This document shows, in pieces, positions 46,356 through 53,256 of a stretch of DNA of 64,000 bases. The stretch's first letter is position 1. Each line of letters opens with the position of its first letter. The notes beneath the pieces are model-generated. The model was not told the origin of the DNA. It made no database searches and saw nothing but the letters and a program-made list of their open reading frames with translations. This DNA is from Blastocystis sp. Blastoise (Eukaryota; Protista; Bigyra: Opalinata): contig JBBPEB010000011.1 in the NCBI GenBank assembly GCA_039096225.1, positions 744,001-808,000 on the forward strand, in the 5' to 3' direction. The position numbers and the translations under genes were made by a program.

Positions 46356-46679
46356 GCCAATAGTACATGGCTATTATTCTATATATATAATAGAACAATT
46401 TATTTCTTGTTTACTTATATAATCACTATGAGGCATTCCCGTAAATATTATTTGCAGATCAACGCCAATTGTTGTAGAATTTTTTTAAGATAAATTCAGA
46501 CATATGATTAGAGAATATATTCACGGGAATAGTTTTGCGTAAAAACTGTCCTCTTTTTTAAGAATTTTCAGTGATTTTCAACAAAATTTAAAAAAACACA
46601 ACAATTTATTAATAATTACAAATTTTAATAACTAACAAGAAAAACATAATTATATATATATATATAGATATAAGAATAA

Positions 46680-47211
46680 GCAAGACTTTTAATTATATAT
46701 AGTTTCTACTAGCCTCTCCTAGTTTCTATTACCCGATTAAGACTAAAACTAAAAAGAAATATAAAATTAGTATATTAAAATAATATTATTAGATAATATA
46801 TACCTTTTTGAAGAACCTTTAGTTAAGACTAGCAGAGGAAAAGGTAAAACTATAATAATGAATTATAAAGTTAAAATATATAGATAGAATATACCTTAGA
46901 AACCTTTGTAACCCTTATAGGAATGCTTCCAGAGGACAGAAATAACCTATATACTATAATAATAGTTAATTGTAAAAAATAAATACATAAATAAATACCT
47001 TTAAAAGAATACGGATCAGATCAGGAGGACTTGATACACCACGTACTAGCTATAGAATATAAAAATAGTTAATGTATAAAAATATGAATGTAAAAACATA
47101 CCTTAATACCAATAAATCAAGATCATGATGGGTTTCTATCACCATGGTTTAGCTCGAAAAGAATCAGACAAATGGAGCCATATTTGTAGTTATTTTGAGA
47201 AGAAAGAGAGC
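46680..47211 (-). other. Spliced multi-exon sequence without an intact ORF (ncRNA or decayed gene fragment) inside the CACTA element
   Basis: Exons 47211-47102, 47049-46999, 46946-46895, 46849-46804 and from 46748, separated by 45-55 nt AAG|GTAT...TAG introns. Exons are GC-richer than the flanks, with stops in all frames. Confidence 0.6.
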
Positions 47212-48029
47212 CTATATTATATAAGATATATAAATAATAAAAATTACATTTTTAAAAACTTTATAAAAAGCTTTAATAGATAATAAATAAAAAGATTTAT
47301 GTCAAAATACAAAATTTTTTTACATAAAACAAACATAGGGTGGCCCTTTTATAAAATCTTTTTTTTCCTATAATAAAAGCCTGTATAATTTTTTTTATTT
47401 CCAGGGGTGAACAAAATTTTTAAATTTTTCTCTGTTTCTCTACTAAAAAAAGTCTATTTGAATATAAATTAATATATAAGTGTTGTATGTGTCTATTAAG
47501 TTTAATTATTTAATTATAACAGATCTCCGGACTTAATTAAACAAGAAAATTGCTATTTTAATAAACTATTATTACAATTAAATATATTTGTTAGTTATAT
47601 TTATACAATAATTTTTTATTTTTAATAAGAGTGCAATGGAGAATCAAAAAATATATTTAGTATAGTTATTTATGAAGATATAATTCGCAATTTACAACTT
47701 TTGTTTTATAATATGTTTTATATCAACGAATCATATATTAATATTAGTGAATAAATGAACTGAGAATGTCTGAGAGATTCTTAAGTTGTTTTATGCTTTA
47801 TAAAGAAAATTATAAAAAATTAATAAAAACTATATTAATAGTTACTCATTTTTCCTGTTTTTCTAAGAATTCTTTTAGAATAATCTTATTCTTAAATAAT
47901 ACTAAGCAAAATTAATATAATAAATAAATATAAACCAATAAAAAATAGATAAAATAGATATTAGATAATATATATATATATATAAGTAACATCATTATAA
48001 TACATATAATATATATATGTCTGAAGCTT

Positions 48030-51000: not shown

Positions 51001-51950
51001 TATACCTTTATGACATATATTGGCTAATATATATATATATCTTTGCCACATCTGTAACATTCTAATATATACCTCATCCGATATATGGTCATCCACCAAA
51101 TTATCTAAAGCCTTCTCTATATATATTATATAAGAATATGTATATATATTATATACTATAATTATACATACTTCTTTTAATATCTAAAGATAATGTGTTA
51201 AATAACCAGCTAATTTATCTTGATCATCTATATATATATATATATATTATAATAATAATAATAATAATAATAATAATAATAATAATAATAATAATAATAA
51301 TAATAATAATAATAATAATAATAATAATAATAATAATAATAATAATAATAATAAATAGACATACCATTTTAATTTGAAAGAATATTATCAACAATCGGAT
51401 TTGTAAATGGGGAAAAAAATTCATATTCTATATATAATATAATAAAATTAACATAAAATAATATAGAAATAAAATAAATAAAAAATAAATAAATATTTAA
51501 TATAGGAAAATAAAAAAACAAGAAAAATGTTAATGCAAACGAAAAAAAATATATACGATATTTATATACTGTTGATAACATATTGAGTTGTTGTTTGACA
51601 TTGATTTGAGTTAGTAGAACCAAAAAGAACCTAAAAAATAATAAAAAAGAAATGGAAAAAAAATACCTTAATAGATAGAGCGAAGCATCAATCCTTTTTT
51701 GGTAAACACTTTTAATAGTGACTGAGGAGACTGTTTGAATGCAGACGGGAAGCCAGAATCAAGAACCTAAAAGAATTATATAAAAAAATAGGAAATATTC
51801 AATAAATAAATTATGATATAATATATACCTGTATAGAAAACACTTAAGATATGCATAGCAGTCACTAGATCTGCTTGTATGCAACAAATTAAAAATAAAG
51901 ATAAATTCATATTTAAAGTCAATTTTTTAGTCAAATACTAAAAATTCTCA
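48030..51950 (-). pseudogene. Decayed multi-exon protein gene (unidentified) inside the CACTA element
   Basis: Long protein-like frames with GT-AG introns are interrupted by in-frame stops (e.g. 51369, 51184, 50858, 50277, 49870, 49735, 49340, 49331) and a frameshift near 50530. Confidence 0.75.
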
Positions 51951-53256
51951 TAAAAATTCATTTTTAAATTTTTTTTTTAATTTTTATGACTCAGTACTAA
52001 AGTAACAAGTTTTAACAATTATATATTACACTATTGACACAACATTATTGTATCCCACTACTTTCAGGTTTTAAAAAATTACTCATTTTTGTTGACTCTC
52101 TGATCTGTTTATATTCTGTTCTAAAAACTATTAATTCTGACATAAAACGTTTTTATAATACATAATTCACTCTCAAAACAACTTTTTAAAAGACTTTTCT
52201 TTGATTCTGAGGAAAAGTAGTTTTTTTATAAGTTTTGACATACTCTTTGTATGCGGAACTTTAAGTCATGATAGAATAAAATGAAAAAAGTCTTTTAAAA
52301 CTCTTATGTCGTCTGATATATAATAAAATATAAATAGACTCACTTTTAAACAATAAAAATATTCCCGTAAATATTTTAAAAATTCAAAACTCTGGTCTGA
52401 TTGCCCATGGAACAAATAGGCTCGGTTCAATTTTTCAGTGTAAAAAAAATATAAATTTTTGACTTTTTGACTGAATTTTGGTTTTGTCCCATAGAGGTCA
52501 GCTTATTCACTTTTAATCATATATGTGACTATGAGAGGGTCTAAACTTTAAACAGAGCAACAAAAGGTTTTAAAATATTGACCCCAATATTTGTCGGAAT
52601 TGCGACTTTAAAATAAATAAAAACGTTTTTGATATTGTGTGACCCACTGATATAAAAAAATAATGTTAATTCTTTAATAAAATTTGTCTAACAGGGTCTT
52701 TGTGTCTAAATCAACAGTCGACTTATAAATTTTGTGAAAATTTTCATTTTTTTGCCTAAGTCTTTTTTTTATTCAAATTTTATTGGCTGAATAAGTTCTG
52801 AACGAAAATTAGCCAATCAAAAAGCTTTAAAAATTAAAAAGTGCCTCATAGTGAATCATTCCTATTAATAGCATTGTTTTTGTTTATATGTTAATGAATT
52901 TGTAACAAAAGTTAAAAAATTATTTAAAACAATAATTTTAAAGAATAATTGGTTTCACTTAAACTAATAATAATTTTAAAAAACAATTGAAATACTCGAG
53001 CTAGTATCTATAAATAATATACATGAATAAAAAATAATACACTCCAGTGGATACAAAATAATACAAATTTAAAAAAACAATAATATTAAAAAAGAAAAAA
53101 ATATAAATAATTAAAGAAATTTATTTATATATAAATAACCAAATTATTTATACAATATAATTAAATATAATTTTAAAATAGCACAAATAAATCTCTCTAT
53201 ATATATTGAAAAATACATAGACGAGACAATAAATGAATAAATAAAATTGAATAAAT

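Follow-up and report, generated by a model that had tools for sequence, protein, structure and literature searches.

We identified a non-autonomous DNA transposon of the CACTA type (En/Spm, CMC-type) in the genome of Blastocystis sp. Blastoise. The element occupies positions 46424-52853 of the window, the whole 64,000-nucleotide stretch of DNA that was analysed (contig JBBPEB010000011.1, positions 744,001 to 808,000; G000:C34:744001-808000 in our numbering, in which the 33.3-Mb genome consists of 34 contigs with C labels). With a probability of about 0.88 we regard it as one copy of a multi-copy family that is mobilised in trans and carries orphan cargo in neutral decay. A preliminary description, made from the sequence of the window, had proposed a Pack-CACTA element, i.e., a CACTA transposon carrying captured host genes. 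The CACTA identity, the lack of a transposase and the gene-like interior were borne out by our analysis, whereas a host parent of the interior was found neither in protein searches nor in searches of the genome.

The element ends in CACTA...TAGTG termini which form short terminal inverted repeats (TIRs). The exact 12-mer CACTATGAGGCA is present at the left end (46424-46435, plus strand) and, inverted, at the right end (52842-52853, minus strand), giving two matches in the window against 0.04 expected. The inverted repeat is perfect and exactly 12 bp long; the bases beyond it differ between the two ends. As described earlier, these termini are flanked by AAT on both sides (46421-46423 and 52854-52856), forming a 3-bp target-site duplication (TSD), and the predicted unfilled target site is TTACTTATATAAT directly followed by CATTCC.

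In the genome as a whole, CACTATGAGGCA has 35 exact occurrences, mostly arranged as convergent pairs 6.3-19 kb apart. The 12-bp TIR is identical in all 14 pairs that were read, and 13 of these 14 are flanked by a perfect 3-bp TSD. At a GC content of ~22% the chance of a 3-bp match is ~0.035, and since TSDs such as GGT, AGT and AGA are among those observed, the AT-richness of the genome does not explain 13 matches in 14 pairs. Six copies of 6.3-6.8 kb (L031, L034-L037 and the window copy, L040), referred to as subfamily A, can be aligned end to end and share 95.6-99.1% identity at aligned bases, the window copy being the most diverged. The 5.8-kb interior is common to at least 18 copies in the genome, and a genome-wide search located the cargo exon in 18 places. 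The 12-mer is thus neither confined to this locus nor without a family, and other loci carry the interior as well. A search with the last 400 bp of the element gave at least 40 scored matches among 87 candidates genome-wide.

One of the six copies, L035, contains a nested miniature inverted-repeat transposable element (MITE) of 97 bp (L035:6171-6270, equivalent to window position ~46779) with ATA as TSD and with ends related to those of the element (CACTGATAGGCA ... TGCCTATTAGTG). The site is unfilled in the five other copies, which provides a direct filled-versus-empty comparison for ends of this kind. MITEs of 97 bp with ends CACTATTAGGCA or CACTRATAGGCA were also observed as a family, with at least 11 pairs listed (e.g., G000:C8:600098-600194).

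The 46424-52853 element has no long open reading frame (ORF), and a tblastn search with the tnp2-like ORFs of the genome gave no match in the window copy, in agreement with the earlier statement that it lacks a transposase. A tnp2-like transposase is encoded by three elements of 13 kb which have identical 12-bp ends and perfect TSDs. The ORF is intact in two of these elements (C19big, 867 amino acids; C23bigA, 874 amino acids), and the homologous frame of the third (C30big, L049) is present in three pieces. C30big shares 94% identity with the left 89 bp of the window element (46424-46512, plus strand) and 71% with its right 540 bp, but no similarity in the stretch that separates them. The 867-amino-acid ORF was aligned over 731 amino acids (E = 7e-28) with a 744-amino-acid ORF elsewhere in the genome. 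This second ORF scores 28.0 bits on the Pfam domain Transposase_21 (cut-off 28.6) and weakly on DUF4218, and its 758-amino-acid paralogue passes the Transposase_21 threshold at 29.5 bits. In the alignment of the 867-amino-acid ORF, motifs usual in tnp2-type proteins are retained (DG, D-x-[PA]-E, C-x-x-C, D-x-[ML]-H and, towards the C-terminus, E-[RQ]-x-Y). The preliminary description had suggested a search for Transposase_21/TnpD homologs; the link of the 13-kb relatives to Transposase_21 is transitive. At least six lineages of tnp2, with mutual identities of 23-50%, are present in the genome, and a word-based search of 5.8 billion proteins found relatives of the 867-amino-acid ORF in this genome only. 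Since a transposase is encoded by 13-kb relatives that share its ends, the window copy is most likely a non-autonomous member moved in trans, and a source of transposase in these relatives would make the system an ordinary autonomous/non-autonomous pair.

A second CACTA family (L041-L044; G000:C5:498379-504261, and on C19 and C23) has the ends CACTACTGTCG and an intact tnp2-like ORF, the 758-amino-acid paralogue mentioned above. Its copies are 99% identical, from which the family looks recently active.

The regions adjoining the TIRs contain short repeats and are partly shared with other elements. A 14-nucleotide motif, ATTCCCGTRAATAT, has three exact occurrences in the window against 0.02 expected, all of them within the element. 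At the left end, two of these are paired in inverted orientation (46435-46448, plus strand, and 46517-46530, minus strand; span 46435-46530), and the third lies in direct orientation ~480 bp inside the right end (52361-52374, plus strand). A shared subterminal motif had been reported near both ends, which does not fully describe this layout. The motif is found at the same three places in 6 of 6 subfamily A copies, and its TIR-adjacent copy is present in C30big as well. The right subterminal region (51327-52853) is the most widely shared part of the element in genome-wide matches, and the last 540 bp also show 79% identity to L038. Within the right 950 bp, AAAACGTT occurs four times (0.06 expected) and short words are enriched; no 9- or 10-mer recurs three or more times.

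The interior is built as a mosaic of three modules. One of these (47181-48968) is shared with a further subfamily, C, at 69-74% identity. Protein-level conservation between subfamilies A and C was considered as a cause of this similarity and rejected, as tblastx matches were found in all frames, which leaves similarity at the DNA level only. At the start of this module lies a block of ~330 bp (47179-47510) that is the only interior stretch common to subfamilies A, B and C (~69-71% identity; counterparts at L038:861-1190, L032:705-963 and L033:6220-6478), the interiors being otherwise unrelated. The counterparts share the words GCCTATAT, TCCAGG and AAAGTCT. The block looks non-coding, and it may be a cis element or a promoter. 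The middle module (~48970-51330) contains an orphan ORF that is restricted to subfamily A and its close relatives. A long simple repeat is present at 50617-50723, and neither tRNA-like sequences nor Rfam RNAs were found within the element.

Contigs from the sequencing runs X1 and X2 were aligned to positions 46424-50600; one run is a poly-A library, and X2 is recorded as RNA, whereas X1 is presumed to be. Six joints in these contigs have CT..AC ends and correspond to GT..AG introns of a minus-strand transcript (46749-46803, 46850-46894, 47050-47101, 47211-47246, 48371-48458 and 48520-48700). One contig of 423 nucleotides skips four introns and retains the intron-like block 46954-46998. As this contig is no simple copy of intron-poor DNA among the six copies read, it argues for real splicing. 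The exons at 46.8-47.2 kb, read singly, contain stops in all or nearly all frames. Further upstream in the same minus-strand unit, remnants of one or more large exons (49547-50941) show 82-94% identity to the NCBI gene models P0005-P0009, which represent the orphan gene in sister copies, and exons at 51007-51910 match the N-terminal parts of P0005 and P0007. Better-preserved copies of the large exon encode a Ser/Thr/Asn-rich protein of at least 338 amino acids. In the window copy the large ORF is broken by in-frame stops, frame changes and the loss of a 72-bp GT..AG block at ~49743. The stop-riddled, multi-exon interior described earlier was therefore found again, and its decay is evident, but the plural "genes" was not supported, as the interior looks like one minus-strand transcription unit.

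Substitutions among the six copies are distributed 31/27/35 over codon positions 1/2/3. Of the changes in the cargo, 20 are synonymous and 46 non-synonymous, where ~21% synonymous changes are expected without selection. In-frame stops are present in five of the six copies, with two in the window copy. The cargo gene is decaying, with near-neutral substitution.

Seven blocks of 42-103 bp are precisely present in some of the six copies and missing from others. All seven have CT..AC ends (GT..AG on the minus strand) after equivalent placements or, for one block, using the version of L037. Each block is missing from one or two copies in differing combinations: 46850-46894 from L035; 46954-46998 and 47050-47101 from L035 and L037; the block at ~48037 from the window copy and L037; 49202-49243, of 42 bp, from L031; the block at ~49743 from the window copy only; and 51114-51168 from L035. 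Two of the seven coincide with splice joints in the RNA contigs. Shared variants regroup the six copies along the length of the element, so the copies are recombinants (mosaics) of each other. The usual account of precise intron loss is conversion by complementary DNA (cDNA) of a spliced transcript. At least 20 reverse-transcriptase matches were found in the genome, most in open frames of more than 1,000 amino acids and up to 2,787 amino acids, and repair of the gap left by excision could give many openings for conversion by cDNA. We tentatively propose, as a possibility that we would not favour at present, that the copies are rewritten from their own spliced RNA, with the element's cDNA or RNA as template for repair of the double-strand gap that excision leaves. 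If this were true, the family would serve as a natural reporter for RNA-templated repair and would reveal an unusually rapid way of losing introns. That near-identical copies often lose introns precisely could make the mechanism of the loss testable.

The origin of the cargo was examined at the protein and genome level. A word-based search of the 5.8 billion proteins for homologs of the cargo yielded four, each of them encoded in this genome on a contig with element copies. A profile hidden Markov model search of 1.84 billion cluster representatives returned three sister-copy proteins and one low-complexity false match. No Pfam domains were detected in the cargo, including P0005-P0008, and look-alikes in the ESM Atlas gave no usable lead, the model of the cargo protein being disordered (predicted local distance difference test score, pLDDT, 0.35). 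The search for intact parental copies in the host, as advised earlier, recovered only gene models inside sister copies. In the genome, the cargo exon has 18 matches, all of them at sites that also match the element and, except for a fragment on C25, within longer copies. No similarity to the cargo proteins was found among ORFs from the 13-kb elements, subfamily B or subfamily C. Pack-TYPE elements are recognised by an interior traceable to host coding genes outside transposons; the interior of the window copy could not be traced in this way, and as no host gene matches it the copy would belong to the non-Pack class of PMC8903248. An origin from a cohesin loader was considered and rejected: Pfam Nipped-B_C matches only C18:750233-750430, a locus that the cargo N-terminus does not match.

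The fragment on C25 (G000:C25:593281-595611) matches only interior positions 3034-4939 and has an open frame of 511 amino acids, longer than that of any other copy. Among the matches listed, none nearby represented element ends. This locus could be a parent gene, a domesticated or derived copy, or a truncated copy of the element.

A traceable host sequence is present in the sister subfamily B (L032 and L033), which has the same 12-bp ends as subfamily A and has ~1.2 kb of one end in common with the intact 13-kb elements. Its members hold two collinear exons that match positions 304-377 and 480-521 of the Pfam domain tRNA-synt_2c and are assigned to alanyl-tRNA synthetase (L032:3153-4028, minus strand; L033:2364-3341, plus strand). 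A genome search found alanyl-tRNA synthetase pieces inside B elements on C15 and C17 and further pieces on C3 (G000:C3:1373911-1374450) and C2, to which a protein search added C10:158937-159349. Full loci are present on C19 and C16 (multi-exon, G000:C16:1862900-1865640), and one element-borne exon shares 84% protein identity with C16:1864667-1864918. The captured host-gene fragment in subfamily B is thus real and traceable. The proposal that CACTA elements move pieces of host genes in this protist accordingly holds for this sister subfamily and is doubtful for the window copy on which it was based.

Two pairs of B-type left and right ends, with matching 3-bp flanks, are far apart, one of 50 kb on C7 (G000:C7:35594-85780, CTA/CTA; ends in L001 and L002) and one of 35 kb on C10 (G000:C10:126137-161457, AAT/AAT; ends in L003 and L004). 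These pairs may represent CACTA elements of giant size or with heavy nesting.

Taken as a mobilised family member, the window element would retain only what the transposase needs in cis, namely the 12-bp ends CACTATGAGGCA, ~90 bp on the left and ~0.5-1.5 kb on the right, and the tnp2-like transposase of the same-ended 13-kb relatives would move it in trans, with each insertion creating a 3-bp duplication (AAT at the window copy). The 5.8-kb interior, unrelated to the interior of these relatives, looks like a single minus-strand, multi-intron, spliced gene-like unit, and its product is a Ser/Thr/Asn-rich orphan protein that is mostly disordered. The unit would have been carried along while the family multiplied and is now decaying neutrally, in copies that swap sequence with one another and shed introns precisely. 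Several observations weigh against this account. Many sister copies match only up to 7 bp before the right tip, and the filled-versus-empty comparison exists for the nested MITE in L035, not for the AAT insertion at 46424-52853. Classic multi-copy subterminal repeats are weak in the element. The 867-amino-acid ORF itself has no Pfam match, its link to Transposase_21 being transitive. In C30big, the only transposase carrier with ends of the A type, the ORF is spread over three frames, and the element may be dead. Intact ORFs are those of subfamily B, which differs from A in its subterminal regions, and cross-mobilisation of A copies by B transposases is assumed.

Three other explanations were weighed. 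That the inverted 12-mers and AAT flanks arose by chance in AT-rich DNA, without any mobile element, is extremely improbable: a single AAT match is expected about once in 30 in this genome, but the excess of the 12-mer in the window, its 35 exact paired copies, the 13 perfect TSDs in 14 pairs and the homology of the copies over their full length all speak against it. The interior gene could also be an accessory, TnpA-like second protein of the family itself, kept in a deletion derivative and now decaying. The autonomous relatives do have extra ORFs to the right of their transposase on the opposite strand, i.e., on the side and strand of the unit, and the orphan protein is confined to element copies. 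However, no ORF in the 13-kb elements, in subfamily B or in subfamily C resembles the cargo proteins, purifying selection is absent, and subfamily C has the flanking modules without the orphan ORF, which together make an accessory gene quite unlikely.

A true Pack-CACTA, with an interior captured from one or more host genes whose parent is lost, unannotated or represented by G000:C25:593281-595611, has more in its favour. The interior is unrelated to that of the autonomous relatives, like a cellular gene it contains real GT..AG introns and gives rise to a transcript, and a subfamily with the same 12-bp ends carries alanyl-tRNA synthetase exons; the C25 locus, matching interior sequence only and having the longest open frame, would suit a parent. 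Yet the C25 piece is as close to the copies as the copies are to each other, which fits a truncated copy, and the 18 matches of the cargo exon are all in element-matching places. The cargo does not match the cohesin-loader locus on C18, homologs outside this genome are absent from the 5.8 billion proteins and 1.84 billion representatives, and the protein has neither a Pfam domain nor an ordered Atlas model. Capture from a host gene is therefore possible for the window copy but, in our judgement, doubtful, and we retain the reading as a non-autonomous CACTA copy with orphan cargo.

Understood in this way, the window element is an ordinary kind of mobile DNA. It resembles non-autonomous CACTA/En-Spm elements such as dSpm/I of maize (CMC) in its CACTA...TAGTG termini, short TIR, 3-bp TSD and a conserved motif adjoining the TIR, and by analogy it would likewise need the tnp2/TnpD transposase of longer, same-ended relatives. 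Unlike dSpm/I, it has an interior of unrelated DNA rather than a deletion remnant of an autonomous element, and it resides in a gut protist, a stramenopile, whose GC content is 22%. Subterminal repeat arrays, as in the classic CACTA/En-Spm elements, are not evident, and in contrast to known CACTA elements the transposases have diverged to the point where the Pfam threshold is reached by some paralogs only. With the Pack-CACTA/Pack-TYPE elements of plants (PMC8903248) it shares a TIR and TSD, the lack of a transposase, an intron-containing gene-like interior and multiplication by transposition, and the traceable alanyl-tRNA synthetase fragment of sister subfamily B is a further likeness. It differs from them in that no host gene matches the subfamily A interior, which would place it in the 'non-Pack' class of the packFinder scheme, and in that the host is a protist.

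Among the eukaryotes of the human gut, Blastocystis is the most common. The CACTA family is moderately young and multi-copy, and such families are, as far as the literature was searched, undescribed in print for this lineage. In the text of the genome description (PMC12129017), which reports a 33.3-Mb Blastocystis genome of 21-23% GC from a tortoise isolate, transposons appear as overall percentages only. The analysis defines a concrete CACTA family with its ends, TSD, transposase-bearing relatives, MITEs and a gene-carrying subfamily. It is also of use for annotation, as several 'hypothetical proteins' in the NCBI annotation (P0001-P0009) belong to transposons, either as their own genes or as cargo. 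Of wider interest is the fragment of a housekeeping gene that a CACTA element has captured outside plants.

Two further elements were observed. A CACTA pair of 19.4 kb (L051 and L052 joined; G000:C23:138885-158269) has AAT as TSD, and its joined positions 2739-8882 contain minus-strand ORFs of 1041, 434, 163 and 407 amino acids with a Helitron-like Rep motif recognised by eye, which probably represents a Helitron nested inside a CACTA element. In the window itself, the element at 1005-4822, earlier called a Mutator-like element (MULE), has perfect TIRs of 243 bp that are 100% complementary and 3,332 bp apart, and it is flanked by A-runs that permit a 7-9-bp duplication.

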